Below, one piece after another: positions 7,119 to 64,000 of a DNA stretch of 64,000 nucleotides (its first letter is position 1; the number at the start of each line of letters is the position of its first letter). A model generated the notes under the pieces. The model ran no database searches. It saw only the letters and a program-made list of their open reading frames with translations, and was not told the origin of the DNA. The DNA is taken from positions 139,996,001 through 140,060,000 of the forward strand of contig NC_042997.1 of assembly GCF_006345805.1 (NCBI RefSeq), given 5' to 3'. The translations under genes were made by a program, and so were the position numbers. This stretch comes from Octopus sinensis. Taxonomy: Eukaryota.

Positions 7119-7505
7119 GATGTCAGGCCAAATGAACCAAAGGAACAATGCCGAAGGTCTGAATTCGATAGTTTAATTCCCATGATTGACATGCAATCGG
7201 AATGTCACGGAAGCAAGTTGATGAAAGGATATCAGAAGTTACGAGATGATGAGCATTTATTTGACTATACAATATATGTTGAAAATGAGAGCATATCTGT
7301 TCATAAAACTTTGTTGGCTGCAAGCAGTGACTATTTTCATGCCATGTTGACAGGAAGTATGAAGGAAAGCCGTGAGGACTCTGTAACATTGCGTGGTCTT
7401 ACAGCTATAGGAGTTCAAGCCATTATCAACTTTGCTTACACTGGCTTGTTAGAAATAACAAGCGATAATATAGATGACATTCTCTTAGCTGCTAGCCATC
7501 TTCAG
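7119..7505 (+). CDS. Kelch-like protein, BTB/POZ exon
   Basis: Acceptor TTTCTATTAACAG|G at 7118. Frame open from 7119 (DVRPNE..PMIDMQSECHGSKLMKGYQKLRDDEHLFDYTI..HKTLLAASSDYFHAMLTGSMKES..IINFAYTG..LLAASHLQ). Donor CAG|GTAAAG at 7505/7506, phase 0. The start is either ATG 7182 or an upstream exon that I could not locate. Confidence 0.92.
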
Positions 7506-7989
7506 GTAAAGCTTATTTTTTTAAAAAATTATTTTCTTTTATTCATTTATTATTTTTATCACCTTTGAGAGCAACAGGTAGTTAAATTGCTAGTACTTCA
7601 GACTTCCAATTGAAAGGATTACAATTCATCAACTGTTCCCAATGCTGAGTAAGATCCATGGCGAAAATAATTTAGTTTAAAAGAATCTAGGGACCCATTT
7701 TAATTTAGTTAGGTTTCATGAATTGAGTAAAACTCACTATTGTAAAAAGCAGGAGCATTGTGTAATTGATGATTGTTTCACTAATCTTGCAATGCTAAGT
7801 TAAATTCTTACTATCTATAAAGTTTGAAAAGATGGGCTCTATTACATTGATTTGCCCTTGGTATGGACACTACATAAAACAATGTCTTAAAGGTGTTATG
7901 AGACTCACTGTGTGTGTGTGCATGTACATGTAGCATGGTAGAGAGGTGCTATAAACTAATTTTGATTCCTACTTGTAACCATTTCACTT

Positions 7990-23363: not shown

Positions 23364-24731
23364 GTTATTGATTCTGTTGAATTGTGCACTGAATACCTTG
23401 TCAAGTCAATTAATTTGGATAGCTGTGTTGATGTCCTCATCCTTGCTGATCTTTATTCACTTGTAAATGCTCAAGAAAAATCTCGTGACTTCATCCGTGA
23501 AAACTTTGAACGCATTGTTACTTCAGAAAAATATTACCAATTGACACATACTCAACTAGCATTTTTACTTGCTGGAGACAACTTAAGGGTCACTTCAGAA
23601 TACCAACTGGTCATGTTTGTACTTGAATGGGTCAAATGGGATGATCAGGTGCGCAAACAGTATTTACCACAACTGCTTGAAAATATACGCTTACCTCTTT
23701 TACGTGTAGATGAACTTGATAAATTAGCTCGTTTGCATATCATGAGGAATAACCCAGGATGTAATCGGCTTTTCCGTGAAGCTCAAGAATATAATCGTAA
23801 CATTTTTAAACAGCCTATGTATCAGACTAAACGCACTCAGGTTCGGTCAGAAAAAGTTAGTCTTGTTCTTTGCCATGGTGAATCTCCTAAAAGTTATACT
23901 TTTAAAACAGAGAAGTTCACAACTTTGCGAAATCCTTTAATTCCTATGTATAACCCCGGTGTCATTGTTGTTGATAATTTTATGTATGTCTGTGGCGGCA
24001 CTTGCAACAATGATCATAATTTTAACGCTTCACCCCGTTGCTTCCGCTTTGACCCTAGATTTGACACCTGGACTGAATTCACTTCATTATTAGAGGCTCG
24101 AAAGGATTTTGTAATGGTTACTGTAAATAAAACATTGTATGCCATTGGTGGAAAAGATAAGAACAATATCTCTTCTACTATGGAGAGTTATACAGTAGAG
24201 TCAAACCAGTGGAGTTGGAGAGCTCCAATCAACATTGCTGTTTATGGACATGCTGGAGACGTTTGTAAAGGAAAGATCTATGTATGTGGGGGACAAACCA
24301 CAACAGGCTGTGTTAACAATTTTCTCCGCTATGATCCCTCTACTAATACGTGGGAAGATCGTTCACGCATGTTGAGACCTCGTTGCAACCATATTTTGGC
24401 ATGTGTTAAAGAGAAGTTTTATGCAATTGGAGGTAATGTAGAGGATAGTCATGGATTGGCCAGTCCAATTGATCTTATTGAATCTTATAACCCTAACACT
24501 GACCAGTGGACTACAATGGAAGTTACAGTTAGTATTCGAAAAGCAGGTGCTTTTGTACGTGATGATAAAATCTATATTACAGGTGGACTGAAAGAGCAGA
24601 GGCTTTTAGAAATCATTCAAGAGTATGACCCTGTAAAGAACACGTTAAAAACTTCCCACACCTTTCCATTTGTCATTCTTGGCAGGGCATGTTGTTTGCT
24701 CACATTAAACAGATGTGAGCCTTTCCGATAA
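23364..24731 (+). CDS. Kelch-like protein terminal exon (end of BTB, BACK domain, Kelch repeats); KLHL9/13/26-like
   Basis: Acceptor TTTTCTTCTTACAG|GTT at 23363, phase 0. Joining gives ASHLQ|VIDSVELCTEYL, the canonical BTB-BACK junction. BACK motif LLENIRLPLL; Kelch motifs MYVCGG, FRFDPRFDTW, LYAIGG, YGHAG..IYVCGG, FYAIGG, IYITGG; TAA at 24729-24731. Confidence 0.95.
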   Translation, partial: VIDSVELCTEYLVKSINLDSCVDVLILADLYSLVNAQEKSRDFIRENFERIVTSEKYYQLTHTQLAFLLAGDNLRVTSEYQLVMFVLEWVKWDDQVRKQYLPQLLENIRLPLLRVDELDKLARLHIMRNNPGCNRLFREAQEYNRNIFKQPMYQTKRTQVRSEKVSLVLCHGESPKSYTFKTEKFTTLRNPLIPMYNPGVIVVDNFMYVCGGTCNNDHNFNASPRCFRFDPRFDTWTEFTSLLEARKDFVMVTVNKTLYAIGGKDKNNISSTMESYTVESNQWSWRAPINIAVYGHAGDVCKGKIYVCGGQTTTGCVNNFLRYDPSTNTWEDRSRMLRPRCNHILACVKEKFYAIGGNVEDSHGLASPIDLIESYNPNTDQWTTMEVTVSIRKAGAFVRDDKIYITGGLKEQRLLEIIQEYDPVKNTLKTSHTFPFVILGRACCLLTLNRCEPFR

Positions 24732-38196: not shown

Positions 38197-38615
38197 AGGA
38201 GTGGCTGTGTGGTAAGTAGCTTGCCTACCAACCACATGGTTCTGGGTTCAGTCCCACTGCGTGGCATCTTGGGCAAGTGTCTTCTGCTATAGCCTCGGGC
38301 CGACCAATGCCTTGTGAGTGGATTTGGTAGACGGAAGCTGAAAGAAGCCTGTCGTATATATGTATATATACGTATGTATGTGTATGTATATGTTTGTGTG
38401 TCTGTGTTTGTCCCCCTAGCATTGCTTGACAACCGATGCTGGTGTGTTTACGTCCCCGTCACTTAGCGGTTCGGCAAAAGAGATCGATAGAATAAGTACT
38501 GGGCTTACAAAGAATAAGTCCCGGGGTCGATTTGCTCGACTAAAGGCGGTGCTCCAGCATGGCCGCATTCAAATGACTGAAACAAGTAAAAGAGTAAAAG
38601 AGTAAAGAGAGTTAA
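38197..38615 (+). mobile_element. full-length family-A SINE (young), tail (AAAGAGT)n
   Basis: Near identity to 13529-13925. Confidence 0.9.
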
Positions 38616-38619
38616 ATAA

Positions 38620-41414
38620 TAAATACCTGATGATTTGGTGAATCTTATTAAGTTTGCAGCTTCTTGATAAACAATGTTTTTGGTCTTTCCTTGTGGGGCA
38701 TAAAAAAAACAAATGATTAGGATTGCTGACTCTTGAGCATCTCGCATAAAGTTGGCCATGGGAAAAACTGGTTTTGCAAGGTTCAGACCTACCACATCCA
38801 AGGACTGCCCCTGGGCCTTGTTAATGCTCATTACAAAGCTCAGTTTCAATTGGAATTGCAAAGATATACCCGAGGGAATAATTGGAATTCTAGGAATAAA
38901 TATAGGCTCATCACTTGCTTTAGCAGTCAAAATTATTGTCTCCAAGACTGTTAAAATCATCTTCTTTATTATAAATCGCATGCTATTGCAAAGCTTTGGT
39001 GGATTGAGGTTTCAAAACAGCATAACTGGTGCCCCAGTCTTGAGGTGGAATTTGTGAGGTGGGAGGCTGGGTGGTGTTAGACTATTCAAGAATTCAACTG
39101 GATAATTCACAGCTTCATCAATGTTGAGTACAGTGTCAATGGAATTGTATATGTGATGCTCACCTGGCAACTGTTCCAGAAGTTTGATGGTCAAATCATC
39201 AACTGCCACATTCTTTGGACCTAAAATGGCATGGGTTTTCAGCCAGTTGTGGTCTGTAAACTGATTCCTCAAGTTAGGAAACACCTTATTTATTAGTTCT
39301 TTTAAATCAGATGCCATATGTCCAAAAGGCAAGCTTACCCAGCCATCCTTCTCACCAACCAAAGTGCTATTACTGACATCCAACAGTTACTTTGAAAAGG
39401 TTCTGTCTGCATCATCACCACTGAGCTGCAGTCTCATGTTGATTGTGAGTCACAGCTTTTTCACATTGCTCCATAAGTAGGACGACTTTATGCTGGCATT
39501 TACCTCATCAGTTCTTGTCTCTTTTGGAACCACAGGAAGGGTTTGTCTAAAGTTTTCTGCAAGCAAGACTGTGGCACCTCCCATAAGCCTGGTGTTTTGT
39601 CTCAGATCCTGAAGGGCCATGTCAAGAGCTTCAAAGGAAACCTTATGGCACATCGTCGCCTTATCCCAGATGATCAACCTGCATTCACCCAGAAGTTTGC
39701 TTTTTATAGAATCATGACTGATGTTGCAGTTTGCCCTCTCTTTCTTGGACAGGTCCAAAAGGAGTTTGAAGCAGGAATGAGCTGTGTGGCCACCACTTAG
39801 CAGAGTTGCAGCTATTCAACTTGACACCACTGCTATAGCAATGTGTTTCATTTGGCGCAGTTTAGCCAGAAGAACATTGATGACAAATGTCTTGCCAGTT
39901 CCACCTGGAGCATCCAGAAAGAAAAGACCTCTTTCGTTTTCAATGCTTGAAATAATAGTCTTATAAACACTCAGTTGGTCCTCCATCAGTTTGTATTCTT
40001 TATCAGCTAAATATGCCCTCATTTCCTTGATGTCATAGCTGATTTCTCACAAGTACTCAATTGCAAGACTGTTTGCTGCCTGCTCTGGTTGAGGCAGACC
40101 AAATGTGGCAATGCCTTGACCTCCCATAGCTTGCACTCAGGTGTTCAGGTCAAGTAATGCCTCATTGTAAATGGCGTTATTGAACATGGCAATTTCCACT
40201 GAAGTTTGCCTTCGTTTCCTTTGTAGGATGTTCTCTGCCATGCTGGTTTTGTGGGTTGCCCAAAGAAGTTCACCCAAGCCACATATCATCAACATGATAG
40301 AAAATAGCTGGCACAGTTGACTTGGTGCTCTGCTGACTGCTACCTCCTCCAGTGTCTGGTCCCAGTGAGCATTGTCCTCCAGTAGTCCATGTTTGGTGCA
40401 GGCTTCTCAGTAGGTCGTGCAGACCTCCCCATTGTGTTTTTGAAGGTCTAACAGTGTGCAGTAGTAGATGCAGAAAGAAGCAGTCTTGCTGATTAGGGTG
40501 TATAGTGTACACCTGCCCGATGGCCCCACTTCAGATGACAGCAAGTTCTTCCCAGCCCTAAATGCATGCTCCTTGCTTGCATCTGTTCCATCTATTGTGT
40601 GCCCAGGTATAGTACCTCAACATGCAATAATGTTCAGGCAAACAGATTACATTGCCTTAATTTGAAGAAAGCTGTCAAAGTGGTTTCTGGTAGATTCAGA
40701 ACTACGTTTTGAGCATGTCTTCTGTGAAATATACATGCTGGCTATTTTCAAGATGTACAGATAGATTCACCACTGTTGAATGCCACTTGTGGATTTCGAA
40801 GCCCAGGATGTGTCACATTGCCTTGTTAGAGGAAATATACCTGCCCAACTTATATTGCTGAAGTTTGTCTACCTGCCTGCCCTCCTGTTCAAGTCCCCAA
40901 ACCACTATATCTGAATCCTTATTGATGTATTTACATATATATTTAATACTTTTTATAGTTGCATGACTCAACATTAACATGGGCCTGCAATGTTTTAGAC
41001 AGCAATGTGTTGTAGGACATGATCTACCTGTTGTCAATTTCCATCCCCTGACCATAAATATGAGCTTGGTTGTGTTTCTACCATCTTCTGGTTTTCAGTG
41101 CCTGTAGAGTGGGTAACCATCATGTCCTGTATGTGTCTCGTGGATAAATTCCCTGGGGAACTGTTTAATGCACTTCTTGTACTCCATGAAGGGTGATCAA
41201 AGGAAAATGAATGGGTTATTTCCCATGGCTGTTAAAAGAAAATATATGGGTTATATATGTGGACCCCTTCAAGGATCCCTAGCCATCCAATTATAGGGCC
41301 TAATAACAAATTGGATGTTACTTTAACATGTTTGCAAAGTTTCATGAAAATTCATTGACAGGTGTAGATGGCAACTTGACACAAACAGACAACTTGAATT
41401 TATATATGTATAGA
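38620..41414 (-). mobile_element. Helitron Rep/helicase remnant, internally deleted and frameshifted
   Basis: Minus-strand fragments KSIKYICKYINK, FFLDAPGGTGKTF (Walker A), IIWDKATM, ENFRQTLPV, FLNSLTPPSLPPH, SINKAQGQSL. Putative 5' terminus A|TCTATACATATATAAA at 41414; no 3' CTAG found. Confidence 0.88.
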
Positions 41415-43459: not shown

Positions 43460-46400
43460 TATACATACATATATATATATAAGGTTACTGGAGTTCTGTA
43501 ATGTGAATAATCTTTTGATCTGCAACACCAACTTTAGGAAGACTGCCAATCACCTGATAACTTATCAATCAGGTGACTCTGCTAGAAAGATAGGTTTCAT
43601 TTTCACCAGACAGTGGGGTGCATGGTTGCTCTTAAAATGCAGACTCTTCCTGGTGAAGAATGTATTCCCCAGCATAGACTAGTCATTAGCGACTTTAGAC
43701 TCCTGGCCAGAATGATGCCAAGAAGCAGACCAATCTGGAAAAGAAGGACCCTTCATATGGTCAAAGATTTAGGGACATCCTAATTGAGAAATTTGATGAG
43801 AGAGAGGAGCAGCTACAAACTTGTGACATAGAGGGCAACTGGGAATTCCTGCAGGACAACTTGCTGAGCTCCACAGACCAAATCTGTGGCTGGTGCAAAG
43901 ACCATTCCAGACCTAGGGTAACCTGATGATGGAACAATACTGTAGACAGAGCCATTAGAGCAAAGAAACAGGCCTGGAAGAGTGGGGGCAGCAAGGAACT
44001 GTATCAGATAGCCAGAAGGGAAGCTAGGAGACAGGTGTATCTAGCCAAGGGAGAAGCAGAAAAGAAGTTTGCCCATGTTCAGTGACTTGAGGACCAAGAA
44101 CTGAAGTATTTTGGATTGCAAGACAGCGTGTGAGAGAAAATTGTGATGTCATAGGAGCGAAATATGTCAGCATGGATGATGGTGCACTTGCTTTCAATGT
44201 GTCTGCAAAGAAAGAGACTTGGAGATGCCATTATGAAAGACTGCTGAATGTGGAGAATGAATGGGAGGAGGAGAGTCTGCCAAATGTTGACCTAACTGAA
44301 GGACCAATTTTCCGAATTGATAGTACTCTGGGAGATAACGCAATTAGGGATATGAAGACTGAGAAAGCTCCCAGCCCATCAGGGACCACTGCTGAGGTGC
44401 TTAAAATATCCAGGGGTGGGGTTATGGTCTAGTCACCCATATTGTAAATCAGGTGGTCCATGAAGGAGTCATACCCAATGACTGATGTAGCAGCACCATA
44501 GTCAACTGCTACAAGGATAAAAGTGATGCATTAGATATGAATAATTACAGAGATATCAAGTTGTTGGATCAGGTGATGAAAGTTGTGGAGAGAGTCATAG
44601 CATAACTAATCAGGGAGAGAGTTAGTCTAGATGAGATGCAATTTGGCTTTGTGCCATGTAGAAGCACCACTGATACTATATTTCTGGTAAAGCAGCTGCA
44701 GGAGAAACACCTAGCCAAAAATAAACCTCTGTACTTGGTTTTTGTTGACTTGGAGAAAGCTTTTGACAGAGTCCTCCAATCAGTTATCTGGTAGTCAATG
44801 CAGAAACTAGGGAAAGACGAGTGGTTGGTGAGAGCTGTACAAGCCTTGTATAGGGACACTACCAGTAAAGTGAGGGTAGGCAATGAGTACAGCAAAGAAT
44901 TCAGGGTACAAGTAGGGGTTCACTAAGGATCACTGCTCAGCCCCCTCTTGTTCATCGTAGTCCTCCAGGCAATAACAGAGGAATTCAAGACCGGCTACCC
45001 CTGGGAACTCCTCTATGCTGATGACCTGCTCTTATAGCTGAATCACTACCAGAGCTAGAGAAGAAGTTCCAGGTATAGAATCAAAGGGCCTTAGAGTTAA
45101 CCTAACAAAAACCAAAGTCATAGTAAATAGGAAGGCAGACAAATTTCAAATCCCCTCAGATAGATGGCCTGCTCAATCTGTAGAAAAGGTGTAGGTAGAA
45201 ACTCCATACAATGCACCCAGTTTAAGCTTTGGACACACAAAAGGTGCACAGGCATAATAAATGCTGAACATGTGCAGAAAATAGACTCCATCAACTGCCA
45301 GCAGGGGCAAGATAGAAGTAGCAGATAGCTTCCAGTATCTAGACAACCAAGTTAGTAGTGGAGGTGGTTGTTCTGAGAGCATAACTGTGAGAATAAGATT
45401 AGGCTGGGCAAAGTTCAGAGAACTCCTACTCCTGCTGGCAACAAAGGGCCTCTCTCTCAGAGTGAAAAGCAGATTGTTTGATGCCTGTGTGCAAACAGCT
45501 ATGCTGCATGGTAGTGAAACATAGGCTATAATAGCCATGGACATGCATAAGCTTGAGAGAAATGAAGCCAGTATGCTTCGCTGGATGTGCAATGTCAGTG
45601 TGCAGGTTCAACAGAGTATAAGCATCTTGAGAGAAAAGTTAAGCATAAGAGGAATCAGATGTGGTGTGCAAGAGAGATGACTGCACTGGTATGGTCATGT
45701 GATGTGTATGGATGAGAACAGCTATGTTAAGAAGTATCCTGTGGAGGGAACTTGTGGTAGAGGTAGGCCTAGGAAGACATGAGACAAGGTGGTAAAGCAT
45801 GACCTACAAACTTTGAACCTCATAAAGGCAATGACTAGTGAACGAGACCTTTGGTGACGAGTCCTCTTTCCTTAAGAGGACTCGTCAAGCCAAGTACACA
45901 TATGTTGGTGCCACATAATAAAAAAAAATCAACCTTTGGACTTTGGGCACCGTGGCTGAGTACCTTTCGAGCATTGGGCCTCATGGAGGCATAGTGACTG
46001 AGTTCCTTTTGAGTGTTGGGCCTGACGGAGGAAAAGAGTCTGAGTTCATTTTGAGTGTTGGGCCTCATGGAGGCAAAGTGGCAGAGTTCCTTTTGAGTAA
46101 GCCTCATAGAGGCAAGTTGGCTGAGTTCCTTTCGAGCACTGGGCCTCATGGAGGCAAAGTGGCTGAGCTCCTTTCGAGTGTTGAGCCTCATGGAAGCAAT
46201 GACCAAGATCTCTGGCATTATGTCATGCTTGAAAAGAAGACTCATCAAGTAGAGCAAAATTGCAGCCATGGCCGATACTGGTGTCATGCAAATGGTGCCT
46301 GTGTCAATGGCACATAAAAGCACCCTTTACACCCTCAGAATAGTTGGCATTAGGAAGGGCATCCAGCCATAGAAAACCATGCCAAATTAGTCTCGAACCC

Positions 46401-46504: not shown

Positions 46505-46813
46505 ATATATATATGTGTATATATATATGTATGTATACATATACAGATACCTATATATACATACATGCACATACATATATGTACATACATATATGTACAT
46601 ACATACACATACATACAAATACATACATATATATACATACATACACAAACACATAATGGACGTTAAATGATGATGATGATGATGATATATATATATGTAT
46701 ATATATACACATATGTATATATACATACATGCACATACATATATATATATACATACATATACATATACAAACACACATATACATACATACATATACATAC
46801 ATACATACATACA

Positions 46814-46845
<32 letters not shown>

Positions 46846-46850
46846 CACAT
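46505..46850. repeat. (TA)/(CA)/(CATA)n compound microsatellite with a (GAT)n fragment
   Basis: Direct observation. Confidence 0.9.
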
Positions 46851-47981
46851 GACTTATATATAAGGGAACTGAATATCAGAAAATGTATATAAATTGAAAC
46901 AGTTTGTTGGCCTTTTATGTTTTTTTTAAATAATTGTTTATGTTATATTATATTCATAATATATCATGTAATATTATAATATGAATAAATTATTGGATTG
47001 TCAATAGTATCTCACTATTCAATTTATCTTTGTAATTTCATGTACACACACATATATATACACACAACACACATATATATATATATACACACACATATAC
47101 ATATATATATTTATACACATATACACACATAATTATGTATATATATATATACACACACATACATACATACAAATACACATTATATATTTATATATAAATA
47201 CATGCATATACATATGTATATACATATACACATATATGTATTCCAATAAGGAGCAAATAATACAAGAGTGAATATTTGCGAAGATATTATTAACTCTATT
47301 ATAGTCTATGGTACTATAATTAAATTGATAATGACAGAATTAATAATATAGGCGATTGCAGGCCCAAAATAAGCATTAGATAATTAGCTGAATGATGAAA
47401 AATTTATATTGATCAAAGGATAATTTGCAAATATTCACTCCTGAATTATTTACTCCTTATTGGAACTCTTTTCACACTGAGGCTGCTATAACAAATCAGC
47501 GCATTGCAAACTTCAACATGACATTTCTAACCCTGAGCGAGAAAGGAGGGGCAAACCACACAACTTCACATATTCTAGGGTTAGAATTACTGGATATATT
47601 AGGATTTTCAGGGGCAGACAGTTTATAGTTATATTTATTACTATTATTATATTGTTTATGGTTTCGAGCTAAATCCTTTAAATTGCAGTTGATTACTGTT
47701 AAGTATATTTAATGAGCCTAATTTCCCTAAATCTACAGAATTATTAGAAGTGGTATTCACCAGCTTCATTTTTAATTGTCTATTTGGTATATAATAAATG
47801 CCTTTGTCAAATCTGCTTAATTTCAGGGCATTGTTATAAAAATAAAATTCTTATCACTTTATTTGTTACTGTTCCATTTAGTACCTGAACCCAATTCACA
47901 TAATTTATTTCATTGTGTTTTAAATTATGCTTTTGAATTTAATGGTTTTAGTAAATTTATACAGAAAAAAGAAGTATTATA

Positions 47982-52450: not shown

Positions 52451-52859
52451 ACATGAAGAAAAAAATTATCATCCATATCAACATCTAATCTCCATTTATG
52501 TAAAATATGATTGAATTTGTTGAACTTTGTTTAATAAGTTAAATCATATACTTAATATATCTATATATGCATACATATATACATACATACAATATACATA
52601 TATATATATATATATAATATATATGTATGTATATATATATATGCATACATATACAATACATATATATATGTGCATACATATATACATACATATATACACA
52701 TACATACATATATACATACATATAGATACATATATACAATATATATATATATACGTATATAATATATATATATATAATATATATATATTATATATATAAC
52801 AAATTAATAAATAAAACATATGCATATATACATACATATATGTACGAACCTACCTCTAC

Positions 52860-53178: not shown

Positions 53179-53260
<82 letters not shown>

Positions 53261-53295
53261 CATACATATATATATAAATACATACATATACATAC

Positions 53296-53341
<46 letters not shown>

Positions 53342-53405
53342 ATAATATATATATATATATATAATATATATATATATATACATGTATATATACATATACA
53401 TGTGT

Positions 53406-53439
<34 letters not shown>

Positions 53440-54105
53440 CACATACATATATCATTTGTTTTGCAATATTCCTGACGTGAAATTGTGTGTTGAAAGAGAT
53501 ATTGTTGTATTTCAGGATGGTCATTTAATTTTTTTTGCCAAATAAACACACGCACTATATTATTTTTTCTTCACCCATTTATTACTGTTCTTATTCTATT
53601 ATTTTAACTCCTGTCCATTGTCTGGAAATCTTTCATGTGAGTTCTTGCTCCACTAACACCATTCTGTTCTTCTAAGCTGTGTATCCTTATGTGCACATGT
53701 GTGTGCATGCTTGTGAGTATGTCATAGTTTTTAGCAACAGTACGGCCTTCCCCTCAGCCCTATCCTCTCAGCCCACTGTGCTGCTGCTATCCTAAGACCT
53801 GAACCCCCCACCAAACAAAATATGGTACAGTTCCTGTGTATGTGTGTTTGCTCACGTTGTTGCCATTGTGGTAGTTGTTTTTGTTGTTATTGCCATCATT
53901 GGCACCACTGCTGCTGCTGATGTTAGTTGTGTTGTTGACATTGTTATGGCCATTCATTAAATTTCATGTGTGTATATGAGTTTGCTTTATATGTTGTATG
54001 TATCCATGCTCTTTATATAGTTTTATTTATTTATTTTATATATCTCTGTGTCATATTTATCATATGTATATGACAGATATATTTATCTATTTATATATTT
54101 CCTTA

Positions 54106-57340: not shown

Positions 57341-57449
57341 AGTGATATATGGTGATATAAATGATTTAAATAGCATCTTGAGGGTTTGTCTCCATTTTCA
57401 ATTATTTTTATATACACACACATGTATATATACATATATATACACACAT

Positions 57450-57495
<46 letters not shown>

Positions 57496-57599
57496 TCATG
57501 TATATATATATATATATATACATTCATGTGTGTATATATATATATATATATATACATACATACATACATACATATATATACACATATATTTACATATAT

Positions 57600-60578: not shown

Positions 60579-60647
60579 ACATAACCAATCATCTTAGCTT
60601 CAAACTCTGCAGTAGGCAGAGTTTGAAGCTAAGATGATTGGTTATGT
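60579..60647. repeat. perfect 32-bp inverted repeat with 5-nt loop
   Basis: ACATAACCAATCATCTTAGCTTCAAACTCTGC-AGTAG-GCAGAGTTTGAAGCTAAGATGATTGGTTATGT. Confidence 0.95.
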
Positions 60648-60746
60648 CAGTGCTCTCTGTCAGTGTAAAAGGTAAATCCCAACTTGAAATTAGAAATAGT
60701 TTTCTCAGAATTTCTTGAGGATTCATGGAAATGCAATTATCTAAAG

Positions 60747-60753
60747 TATAAAA
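60747..60753 (+). promoter_or_regulatory. candidate TATA box for the sushi gene
   Basis: TATAAAA 114 nt upstream of the ATG. The DNA is AT-rich, and a CTAG acceptor at 60820-21 would also allow an upstream non-coding exon. Confidence 0.3.
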
Positions 60754-60860
60754 GGCTCTCTAAACAGCCACTGAAAATAAAAGTAACTTGCAAGTATACT
60801 TTAAACACAACTATCTTCTAGTCTTTCTTTCACAAAGTTGCTACCATCAAAGTTGAAAGA

Positions 60861-62333
60861 ATGATATTCAAGATTTTGTATTTCCTTTTAATTATCATAT
60901 TAGTTGTGAAGAGTGAAAATATAACAATCAATAATGCTATGAAAAATATTCTATTGGATTATAATAACTCCACTTCAACTGAAAACTTTTCTCCGTGGTT
61001 TTTTAAACAAATGGTAGATATCCTAAACTGTGATTCTTTACCAAAATTAAACAACAGTCAAATGCAGTTTGTTTTGAAATCGAATGAAGAAAAGATATAT
61101 CTGGAACAAATATGCAATCGATATTTTGAAGCAAGCCAAAAGAATACGACTGATATTGTTTGTCTGAATGGTAAATGGAGATATGAAGATAAAAAATGTA
61201 AGTTAATAACCTGCCCAACTTTTCATAAGCCTGCTCACTGTAACATGACAAAAGTTTCATACACATATAAATCTGTTATTTACTTTTCCTGCTTTCCTGG
61301 ATACTTTTTGCAAGGAAACCGTTCAATACGCTGTGAAGAAACGAAACAGTGGTCATCTCCACCACCAGTTTGTAAACGTGTTACATGTATCCCACCTCAT
61401 ACACCAAAACATGCTAATGTGTCCACTACAAAAGAAGTTGAAGTTAACAAAACAATTCATTTCAGTTGTTTGGAACCATATTCATTGAAAGGTAAATCAG
61501 TATTAACTTGTCTTGAAGATGGTGATTGGAACTTTCCAGCACCTGTTTGCACTTGGAAATGTTTAGTGCCCAAAATAGTTGGTAGAGTGACAACTCTCTT
61601 ACAAAATAAAGTTTTAAAACCAAAAACATTAATTCGTAGTGGAAAAAAAGTGTTATATTCTTGTAAACAGCCTTTCCTTCCAGTAGCATTCGGAGTCATT
61701 CAATGTTTGTCAGGTAGATGGCATCCAGATATTCAGTGTAAAAAGACATGTAACATTGAGAGAGTAAAGAAATTAAACTATACTTTATCACATAATTTTA
61801 CAGTGATTGAATATCATTGTCCAGCAGGAGAAACATTATTAGGGGACTCTAAAAGAACCTGTTTAGAAAACGGAACCTGGAGTGGTAAACTTCCAGTTTG
61901 TGTAAAAAAATGTCAACTGTTACCTAACTTAGGCATTTATAGCTACCGAGATTCAGACAACTTACAATACCTTCCATTTGGAAGCTCGGTTCCAGAAAAC
62001 ACTAATATAACATACTTATGTCAGCAAAATTACACAAAGAAAACGGAGAATGTGAGCTGCTCAAATGGTGTATTGACTCCAGTACCACATTGCTCAGATG
62101 AAAGATTTTATGTAGAAAGCAAACATCTTCGATTCAAATATCAATCAACTCATTATTATGTTTGTGAAAATAATTATTCTTGCAATTTTTTTGGTTACCG
62201 TAATTACGGGAAATGTGGTCAAACTTCATGTTATAACAAAAACTGTGTTAGTTTCAGTGTTAACAAAGTATCAAAGCCGTATATGAAGAGATACGATGGA
62301 AGTTGTTGCATTATTATGTGTCATGAGAACTAA
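60861..62333 (+). CDS. intronless secreted protein: signal peptide, six sushi/CCP modules, 8-Cys C-terminal module (490 aa)
   Basis: Hydrophobic N-terminus MIFKILYFLLIIILVVKS. Six four-cysteine units with CCP signatures, e.g. FSCFPGYFLQG..IRCEETKQWSSPPPVC, YHCPAGETLLG..RTCLENGTWSGKLPVC. No transmembrane segment; uninterrupted 1473-bp ORF. Confidence 0.9.
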   Translation: MIFKILYFLLIIILVVKSENITINNAMKNILLDYNNSTSTENFSPWFFKQMVDILNCDSLPKLNNSQMQFVLKSNEEKIYLEQICNRYFEASQKNTTDIVCLNGKWRYEDKKCKLITCPTFHKPAHCNMTKVSYTYKSVIYFSCFPGYFLQGNRSIRCEETKQWSSPPPVCKRVTCIPPHTPKHANVSTTKEVEVNKTIHFSCLEPYSLKGKSVLTCLEDGDWNFPAPVCTWKCLVPKIVGRVTTLLQNKVLKPKTLIRSGKKVLYSCKQPFLPVAFGVIQCLSGRWHPDIQCKKTCNIERVKKLNYTLSHNFTVIEYHCPAGETLLGDSKRTCLENGTWSGKLPVCVKKCQLLPNLGIYSYRDSDNLQYLPFGSSVPENTNITYLCQQNYTKKTENVSCSNGVLTPVPHCSDERFYVESKHLRFKYQSTHYYVCENNYSCNFFGYRNYGKCGQTSCYNKNCVSFSVNKVSKPYMKRYDGSCCIIMCHEN

Positions 62334-62457: not shown

Positions 62458-62463
62458 AATAAA
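62458..62463 (+). terminator. candidate polyadenylation signal of the sushi gene
   Basis: AATAAA 125 nt after the stop codon. Confidence 0.4.
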
Positions 62464-63229: not shown

Positions 63230-64000
63230 GACCTAGGAATTCACAGTGCACATCAAGGTAACAATGCGGAACAGGGGCAACCTTAGAATCTCTGAGGCCA
63301 TCCTCATACATCGGATCTAAGCTCAAAATCAGACCCATAGTATCAGGAACTAACAGTCCTTTCTATAAAATTTCTTGGCTCCTCTTTAAACTCCTCAAGC
63401 CCTTATTACACACATTCCCAGACGCGTCAGCAGCTCCCATGAAATCTTCACAAGACTCAAAGATATCGATCCCTCCATACTTAAGACTAACAAATACCCT
63501 TTTAGTTTAGATGTAGTTTCTCTCTACACCTCTGTACCTGCTTTCCTGGCCATTGATATCCTCATAGTCCACATCATGTCCTTATCTCCCCCACTTCTCC
63601 ATGCCCCTACCTTCCATATCATCTCTACCTCCCTCCCCTTCAACCTCATCTTCCCTATCTACCCTTCATCTTCTCTCACCTCCCCAACCATCAACCTCCA
63701 GCTCTTTGGCCTTACACCCTCAAACATATAAGAGTTACTAACCATTATAGTTGGTAACACCTACTTCCAATATAATGGTGTGATTTACAAACAGACTTTT
63801 GCCCTACCTACGGAATCTAACCTTTCAGGCCTGCTGGCCATCACGTACATAGATAAGCTAGAATGCACAGCACTCAACACTTGCTGCTCATGCATCTTCT
63901 TCTCCAGGTACATTGATGACATCCTTATCATCACATCCTCCAGGGAGAGGCCATTAATATACACTGGACCTTCAATAACACTGACATAAACATCAGCTTT
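63230..64000 (+). pseudogene. Penelope-like reverse transcriptase remnant, running off the window
   Basis: IRPIVSGTNSP, SLDVVSLYTSVP, YFQYNGVIYKQ, FSRYIDDILII; frameshifted. Confidence 0.8.

Follow-up and report, generated by a model that had tools for sequence, protein, structure and literature searches.

Predicted secreted six-CCP proteins with an unclassified eight-cysteine C-terminal module form an octopod-restricted family

Gene structure and promoter

The subject of this analysis is a single gene in a stretch of 64,000 nucleotides (nt) of Octopus sinensis DNA (contig NC_042997.1, positions 139,996,001 to 140,060,000 of the forward strand; the whole stretch is here called the window). 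The gene is a complete single-exon coding sequence (CDS) on the plus strand at 60861 to 62333, an uninterrupted open reading frame (ORF) of 490 codons plus a TAA stop. Its product combines a predicted signal peptide, six tandem complement control protein (CCP, or sushi) modules, and a C-terminal eight-cysteine module for which sequence and profile comparisons point to no cataloged relative outside its own, octopod-restricted family. The gene call of the O. sinensis assembly (chromosome CM016859.1, at about 140.0 Mb) is likewise a single exon, and a stop-free run of 490 codons is expected only about 5e-11 times per window, given the composition of the DNA. All five complete genes of the family for which DNA was fetched are single exons of 486 to 495 codons, and an ORF of equal length is kept in O. 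bimaculoides (90% identity), O. vulgaris, and Argonauta.

The region upstream of the CDS contains a putative core promoter with a TATA box, GTATAAAAG, at 60746 to 60754 (+), 114 nt 5' of the ATG. This box and several blocks of the 5' untranslated region downstream of it are invariant in five of five aligned gene copies (two orthologs and three paralogs), including paralogs whose proteins are only about 60% identical. A TATAAA lies at -100 in the paralog P0030 and at -80 in the Argonauta member P0008, and in every complete gene read at the DNA level (n = 5) the box lies 80 to 114 nt 5' of the ATG. The block at 60768 to 60967, in which 93 nt 5' of the ATG adjoin the initial 107 nt of the CDS, matches its O. 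bimaculoides counterpart at 98% identity, the blocks further upstream being 88 to 92% identical. Downstream, a putative polyadenylation signal, AATAAA, at 62458 to 62463 (+), 125 nt 3' of the stop, is kept in the O. bimaculoides ortholog. The sharing of the promoter across copies indicates that promoter and gene were duplicated together; copying of an intron-less gene at the DNA level would account for this better than repeated retroposition.

At 60579 to 60647, 214 to 282 nt 5' of the ATG, two 32-nt arms separated by a 5-nt loop form a perfect palindrome. Only its left arm is present in O. bimaculoides, where about 22 unrelated bases replace the right arm; the hairpin is thus a recent inverted duplication in the O. 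sinensis lineage and not a conserved regulatory element. A scan for sigma-70 promoters and terminators, which has no bearing on a eukaryote, re-found only this palindrome.

Predicted signal peptide, CCP array, and N-glycosylation sequons

An initial annotation, made from the letters of the window alone, had described a signal peptide, six tandem CCPs, about 17 N-glycosylation sequons, and the absence of a transmembrane (TM) segment or a glycosylphosphatidylinositol (GPI)-type tail, and our analysis bears out each of these features. The signal peptide (60861 to 60914, +; residues 1 to 18, MIFKILYFLLIIILVVKS followed by EN) was recognized by its hydrophobicity, and its predicted cleavage site was placed by inspection with the -3/-1 rule; the flanking motif, VKS before and EN after the cut, is conserved across the family. 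Residues 1 to 19 form the sole segment with a 19-residue Kyte-Doolittle mean above 1.6 (2.1; the best value elsewhere is 1.08). As there is no hydrophobic stretch beyond them, the Kyte-Doolittle profile of the whole protein reveals no TM segment and no hydrophobic GPI-type tail, the C terminus reading CCIIMCHEN. The signal peptide is followed by an N-terminal segment (60915 to 61028, +; residues 19 to 56) that is predicted to be glycan rich, bears a conserved PWFFKQM motif, and has a mean pairwise identity of 62% in the family. No match to it was found in Pfam, nor any similarity to the CCPs by hhalign.

Six units with the four cysteines of the CCP type follow on the plus strand, with a tryptophan in units 1 to 5 and a leucine in its place in unit 6. 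They are CCP1 (61029 to 61199; residues 57 to 113, with four cysteines and Trp106), CCP2 (61212 to 61373; residues 118 to 171), CCP3 (61386 to 61550; residues 176 to 230), CCP4 (61560 to 61739; residues 234 to 293, with four cysteines and Trp287), CCP5 (61749 to 61901; residues 297 to 347), and a divergent CCP6 (61911 to 62093; residues 351 to 411). Against the Pfam Sushi model (PF00084), the whole protein scores 107.6 bits over five stretches, with a cut-off of 20.7. When the modules are scanned singly, CCP2 (E = 1.1e-11), CCP3 (E = 3.5e-12), and CCP5 (E = 1.2e-6) exceed this cut-off, and CCP1 (17.2 bits; E = 0.0069) and CCP4 (E = 0.0056) fall just below it, at about 17 bits (E of about 0.006).

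CCP6 alone has no Pfam match. Comparison of its family profile with those of the other modules by hhalign nevertheless recovered CCP4 with a probability of 87% (E = 4e-6), CCP3 with 71%, and CCP2 with 64%. AlphaFold predicts an all-beta structure for it, with a predicted local distance difference test (pLDDT) score of 75 to 92 as means over 10-residue blocks. The top Foldseek matches to this model are nearly all CCP proteins, including PAPP-A, CD55, C4BP, MASP-3, the GABA-B R1a sushi domain, CR1, beta-2-glycoprotein I, CD46, and factor H, but their E values are 0.2 or higher. Judged by its profile and predicted structure, the sixth unit is a CCP despite the Pfam miss.

The sequon count is exactly 17 N-x-S/T sites, two of which overlap at N35/N36. 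Shuffles of the mature chain give an expectation of 5.5 +/- 2.1, and none of 20,000 shuffles reaches 17; nine of the positions recur in 7 or more of 12 family members. The mature chain, of 54 kDa before glycans, is basic (isoelectric point of 9.0). Together with the signal peptide, these features suggest that the protein is secreted and N-glycosylated. The protein has 33 cysteines in total, a correction to the initial annotation, and the odd one is Cys127 in CCP2 (codon 127; window 61239 to 61241), which adjoins the sequon N128-M-T. It is shared with O. vulgaris and replaced by Ser or Gly in the O. bimaculoides ortholog and in all paralogs; it could remain a free thiol or form an intermolecular bond.

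The C-terminal eight-cysteine module

The last 79 residues (62094 to 62330, +; residues 412 to 490) form the C-terminal module. Its cysteine spacing, C435-x5-C441-x10-C452-x4-C457-x4-C462-x19-C482C483-x3-C487, is exactly as first written down in the initial annotation. All eight cysteines are invariant or nearly so across the family alignment, as are F444 and G445 of a near-invariant FFGY motif that follows the second cysteine. The first 23 residues of the module are cysteine free, and those after the final CC-x3-C are variable. The most variable loops are those around cysteines 3 to 5; the one between cysteines 4 and 5 also differs in length, from 4 to 7 residues. One paralog, P0006, has lost exactly these two cysteines (to Tyr and His), and its 90%-identical neighbor P0030 keeps both; the joint loss hints either that the two are paired and close the length-variable loop or that P0006 is decaying.

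The initial annotation could not match the module to EGF, WAP, ShKT, Kazal, or Ly6 domains, and profile searches agree. In Pfam scans at E <= 10, which the HMMER filters limit in practice to roughly E <= 0.1, the module of the window protein has no match, and no Pfam family recurs between any two of the 10 module sequences scanned. The five matches to single members are to unrelated intracellular families or to Endothelin (E = 5.3). There is, in particular, no support from Pfam for EGF, WAP, Kazal, ShKT, PAN/Apple, CTCK, chitin-binding, or beta-microseminoprotein domains. A profile search of all Protein Data Bank (PDB) sequences with the module returned no match at E <= 10. We also considered a degenerate seventh CCP, as might be suggested by a Y-x-C-x-x-x-G-Y motif; hhalign rules this out, giving probabilities of 0.2 to 1.3% for the module against the six CCP profiles of its own family, with the 64 to 87% obtained for CCP6 as a positive control.

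An exhaustive HMMER search with the module profile against 1.84 billion representative proteins retrieved only three representatives of the family itself (E of 1e-19 to 1e-20), along with two repeat proteins that share a short C-x-x-F-G word (E of about 1e-4) and that we judged spurious on inspection. This search supersedes a short-query word-index search with the module alignment, which missed even family members. The initial annotation had held to a lineage-specific protein with a novel terminal domain unless that domain belonged to a known family spread over many phyla; the profile searches place it in no such family. Structure prediction, which it had also proposed, suggests about six beta-strands arranged in three hairpins, and Foldseek comparison of these low-confidence models with the PDB gave no match at E <= 0.001, the models being too uncertain for a fold to be assigned. 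The mean pLDDT is 61 for the module alone (10 sequences), and module blocks reach 27 to 66 when it is modeled with CCP6 (12 sequences), the alignments being too shallow for confident models. Within the scope of these comparisons, the module appears to be unclassified and to lack cataloged relatives outside its own family.

An octopod family of intron-less genes

A search with the full-length protein and a profile search with 12 sequences, covering 5.8 billion protein clusters, agreed on 11 clusters, every one of them from O. bimaculoides, O. sinensis, or Argonauta hians. After these come generic sushi proteins of beetles and a bat, with 26 to 29% identity over about half of the query or less. 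A cluster look-up added more O. sinensis members and the O. vulgaris copy. "Octopod-restricted" is accordingly meant within the libraries searched, unannotated cephalopod genomes not being among them. In alignment, the window protein matches 11 members (from O. bimaculoides, O. sinensis, and Argonauta hians) over its full length, and it has all the features that define the family: a single-exon ORF of about 490 residues, a signal peptide, the N-terminal segment with its PWFF motif, six CCPs, and the eight-cysteine module with its FFGY motif.

A neighbor-joining tree resolves two lineages, each with an Argonauta member. One contains the window gene, its 90%-identical O. bimaculoides ortholog, and Argonauta P0008, and the other contains the remaining Octopus paralogs and Argonauta P0009. 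The presence of Argonauta in both indicates that the split seems to predate the divergence of Octopus and Argonauta. Tandem duplication has enlarged the second lineage, in which P0026 and P0027 lie 8 kb apart and P0006 and P0030 share one 34-kb O. sinensis contig (VCDQ01000500.1); the window copy is a singleton. No further copies were found in the 64-kb window or within 10 kb around the window gene, P0001, P0003, and P0008; for P0030, the search covered about 1.3 kb of downstream flank. Among the O. sinensis members, P0011 lacks CCP2 and most of CCP3. In the MetaClust sequence P0010, CCP4 of one copy runs into the signal peptide of another, and it is a chimeric model across tandem copies.

The O. 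vulgaris model (P0020; CAI9716043.1; 787 residues) is spliced from a GT at codon 470 of the ORF (window position of about 62267) to an arrestin-C-like gene, LOC115211206, a fusion that removes the last three cysteines of the module. The arrestin-like gene does not lie within 10 kb downstream of the window gene, and in all other copies the frame continues to the conserved CC-x3-C terminus, on which grounds the fusion is probably a mis-join, although a read-through isoform may lie behind it. Such a model, the absence of introns, the loss of two cysteines in P0006, and the loss of two CCPs in P0011 are what a nonfunctional retrocopy or an annotation artifact might look like. That explanation is scarcely credible here, as the ORF, its length, the promoter, and the cysteines are conserved between Octopus and Argonauta, the CCP region has a ratio of nonsynonymous to synonymous divergence (dN/dS, or omega) of 0.40, the promoter was duplicated along with the gene copies, and the arrestin-like gene is remote from the window copy. 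On this sequence conservation, a dead retrocopy is essentially excluded, and the ORF in the window is a real, probably functional, intron-less octopus gene.

Contrasting evolution of stalk and module

Mean pairwise identity in the family is 64 to 81% per CCP versus 38% in the module. The initial annotation had proposed paralog number and dN/dS as checks on its reading; the former gave the 11 clusters and two lineages described above, and the latter separates the two parts of the protein. In the comparison of O. sinensis with O. bimaculoides, dN is 0.030, dS is 0.076, and omega is 0.40 for the CCP region, versus a dN of 0.153 and an omega of 0.88 for the module. In DNA identity, the module (85.9%) falls below both the CCPs (96.2%) and 3.7 kb of noncoding flanks (91 to 94%), its divergence being about twice that of the flanking noncoding DNA (Fisher P = 1e-4). 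The same contrast is seen between O. sinensis and O. vulgaris, in which 4 of 58 module residues are replaced versus 0 of 361 upstream (P = 3e-4), and in a second pair, P0003/P0027, for which omega is 1.36 in the module versus 0.45 in the CCPs.

The dS within the module also seems high. At many of the replaced codons, two or three bases differ, an effect that inflates the Nei-Gojobori dS there, and synonymous differences at codons for the same amino acid are not clearly higher in the module than elsewhere. Measured against the dS of the CCP region, omega of the module is about 2.0 to 2.7. By these rates, the CCP stalk is under purifying selection, and we read the pattern in the module as diversifying selection on a fixed cysteine scaffold.

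The module might instead be an assembly or anchoring tail, used for covalent oligomerization or as a matrix tether in the manner of the C4BP tail or the CTCK domain of mucins, with its divergence resulting from relaxed constraint. Its C-terminal position on a CCP rod matches the architecture of C4BP, the in-module omega values (0.88 and 1.36) are near 1, and the odd Cys127 could make an intermolecular bond. Relaxation would not be expected to carry module DNA to twice the divergence of the noncoding flanks, which is above the neutral expectation; moreover, no CTCK or other Pfam domain is matched, and the low-confidence model of the module is all beta rather than an amphipathic helix. We regard such a tail as unlikely.

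Expression and proposed function

Protein-level evidence for the family comes from the skin-mucus proteome of O. vulgaris, in which entry 321 of Table S2 is the paralog P0030 (A0A6P7TXA6, named "complement factor H-like"), identified by one unique peptide and one peptide-spectrum match with 3% coverage (PMC10138644). The same mucus contains the thioester proteins TEP1 and CD109 (PMC10138644). The peptide is consistent with secretion at the body surface. A literature search by family accessions and by the topic of octopus CCP and selectin proteins returned nothing on the family except this mucus table.

We favor, with moderate confidence, the reading that this is a secreted binding protein restricted to its lineage, with a diversifying recognition head borne on a conserved CCP stalk, in a setting of defense or surface recognition. 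The protein would be secreted, basic, and so heavily N-glycosylated as to be glycan shielded, with a mass of about 54 kDa; its six-CCP rod would serve as a conserved stalk, spacer, or scaffold; and the octopod-restricted, beta-rich module, with four predicted disulfides, would be the ligand-binding head. Selection would keep the stalk, the eight cysteines, and the FFGY motif while driving rapid change in the loops between the cysteines, and this combination of a constrained scaffold with fast loops suggests that the head is engaged with a fast-changing partner. The likeliest setting would be extracellular, in mucus or hemolymph, where the protein might, for instance, bind microbial surfaces or regulate a thioester-protein (complement-like) system. 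We place defense or surface recognition foremost on three grounds: the mucus match, the several gene copies, and the occurrence of thioester proteins in that mucus too. The initial annotation had likewise proposed a secreted protein peculiar to its lineage, with a novel disulfide-rich domain displayed on a CCP stalk, a proposal that accords with the retrieval of octopod relatives only among 1.84 billion proteins.

Several points weigh against this interpretation. The in-module omega values of 0.88 and 1.36 are not significantly greater than 1. Positive selection is argued from the contrast of the module with its noncoding flanks and with dS in the remainder of the gene; the module's divergence might alternatively stem from gene conversion or from a local hotspot of mutation. 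The mucus datum is weak: it concerns a paralog of about 60% identity, and the sample also contained muscle and hemolymph proteins. Expression of the window copy itself is inferred, the sole protein-level datum being that of the paralog. Finally, the AlphaFold models of the module are of low confidence, with pLDDT values of 61 for the module alone and 27 to 66 in context, and Foldseek returned no match to them.

Gamete-recognition proteins classically show rapid, localized replacement around fixed cysteines, together with heavy glycosylation and a restricted taxonomic range. The family could by the same tokens consist of reproductive proteins of the egg coat, oviducal gland, seminal fluid, or spermatophore, the head serving in species-specific recognition of gametes or mates. 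The only protein-level detection of any member is in skin mucus, however, and several retained paralogs fit a defense repertoire at least equally well, so that we consider a reproductive role improbable. A secretion of the salivary or venom glands, with the cysteine-framework head as a toxin-like effector against prey, could also be argued for, as a conserved cysteine framework, hypervariable loops, gene duplication, and secretion are a combination typical of venom peptide families. Yet a 54-kDa glycosylated CCP rod would be an unusual carrier for a toxin, the literature search gave no link between the family and salivary glands, and the one detection is again in skin mucus; we judge a venom function to be very unlikely.

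A stronger form of the interpretation that we favor would see in the module a new disulfide-rich fold originating in Octopoda and in the family a diversified repertoire of secreted recognition molecules in mucosal or humoral immunity. The variable head, borne on a constant CCP stalk, would be positively selected, with the loop between the fourth and fifth cysteines as a hypervariable loop, and the family would be a counterpart of the FREPs of snails, the 185/333 proteins of sea urchins, and the VCBPs of amphioxus. We offer this version tentatively and think it rather doubtful in its entirety. Cephalopods are not known to have adaptive immunity, few of their secreted recognition molecules have been characterized, and the family provides a concrete set of candidates for such molecules. 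Were the module to turn out to be a new fold, with its ligand defined, the catalogs would gain a domain family and an example of how binding domains confined to one lineage originate and diversify; were it a plain structural tail, it would be a routine lineage-specific cysteine-rich domain.

Other features of the window

The window also contains a Kelch-like (KLHL-type) gene on the plus strand (7182 to 7568 and 23382 to 24731), in which a BTB exon is followed 16 kb on by a large exon with a BACK domain and at least five Kelch repeats. On the minus strand, two adjacent ORFs at 38505 to 39383 resemble the C-terminal part of Pif1-type helicases (Pfam Pif1_2B_dom; E = 3.5e-7) and are probably the remnant of a Helitron-like transposon. 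At the edge of the window, a short ORF at 63780 to 63989 (+) with the YxDD motif of reverse transcriptases (RVT_1; E = 1.5e-4, below the cut-off) looks like a fragment of a retroelement. Dense AT and ATAC microsatellites and a 42-bp minisatellite occupy 45952 to 46199, 46505 to 46847, 47050 to 47241, 52555 to 52798, 53179 to 53452, and 57409 to 57599, and these repeats give rise to long spurious "YIYIYI" and "MYVC" ORFs.

Comparison with known systems

The automatic names carried by family members in databases, namely, P-selectin, factor H-like, SVEP1, CSMD3-like, and clotting factor C, imply relationships that the domain content does not bear out. P-selectin consists of a C-type lectin domain, an EGF domain, CCPs, a TM helix, and a cytoplasmic tail; SVEP1 has VWA, EGF, and pentraxin domains; and CSMD proteins have CUB domains alternating with CCPs. 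In the window protein, whose ortholog is named P-selectin (XP_014777951.2), Pfam finds Sushi domains only, and no hydrophobic segment occurs beyond the signal peptide; for the paralogs named SVEP1 and CSMD3, the precomputed Pfam annotation of complete members is PF00084 only. In the absence of any lectin, EGF, CUB, VWA, pentraxin, or TM element, these names are misnomers. Correcting them matters because P-selectin, factor H, SVEP1, and CSMD3 have already been carried into octopus proteomics as evidence of complement regulation (PMC10138644).

A true complement regulator of the factor H or C4BP kind, or a selectin, as these names would have it, could be argued from the CCP array itself and from TEP1 and CD109 in octopus skin mucus, which indicate that a target system exists. 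Given that the names were assigned automatically, that no C-type lectin, EGF, TM, CUB, VWA, or pentraxin domain accompanies the array, and that the nearest matches outside the family reach only 26 to 29% identity over about half of the protein or less, we find this highly improbable. The soluble CCP proteins of the regulators of complement activation type, such as factor H and the C4BP alpha chain, do resemble the octopod protein, as predicted, in being secreted, glycosylated rods of tandem CCPs, and C4BP too ends in a non-CCP domain of about 60 residues. The octopod protein, however, shares with them only the generic CCP similarity, and its gene is intron-less; its C-terminal domain has eight cysteines and is predicted to be beta rich, unlike the helical oligomerization tail of C4BP.

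A further parallel is beta-2-glycoprotein I (apolipoprotein H), which is among the Foldseek matches of CCP6 and in which a short CCP array ends in an aberrant, basic domain with an extra disulfide that is the ligand-binding end. Its terminal domain is a recognizable modified CCP, in contrast to the octopod module, which is unlike the CCPs of its own protein (hhalign probability of 1.3% or less). As a lead only, the three-finger or Ly6/uPAR fold offers the same cysteine order, C-C-C-C-C-CC-C, in a small, beta-rich domain with a long hairpin before the CC, a short closing loop, and fast-evolving loops on a conserved scaffold. The octopod module differs in its loop lengths (x5, x10, x4, x4, x19, x0, and x3), in its leading 23-residue cysteine-free hairpin, and in lacking the N-terminal C-x2-C, the CC-x4-C-N ending, and the conserved asparagine after the last cysteine. 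These differences argue against membership in Ly6/uPAR, and no Ly6/uPAR, snake-toxin-like, or activin-receptor family of Pfam was matched by the 10 modules in the scans described above.

Among mollusks, the "P-selectin-like" CCP genes of bivalves form lineage-specific expansions (PMC9484242). Compared by description only, they are like the octopod family in being a molluscan, lineage-specific, duplicated set of CCP proteins with automatic "selectin" names; the octopod family is set apart by its own N-terminal segment and eight-cysteine module and, in the searches above, has no bivalve among its members. CCP arrays themselves are ordinary, and what appears to be new in relation to these systems is the octopod-restricted architecture, encoded by intron-less genes with putative TATA-driven promoters, in which an unmatched C-terminal domain stands in clear evolutionary contrast to the stalk that precedes it.

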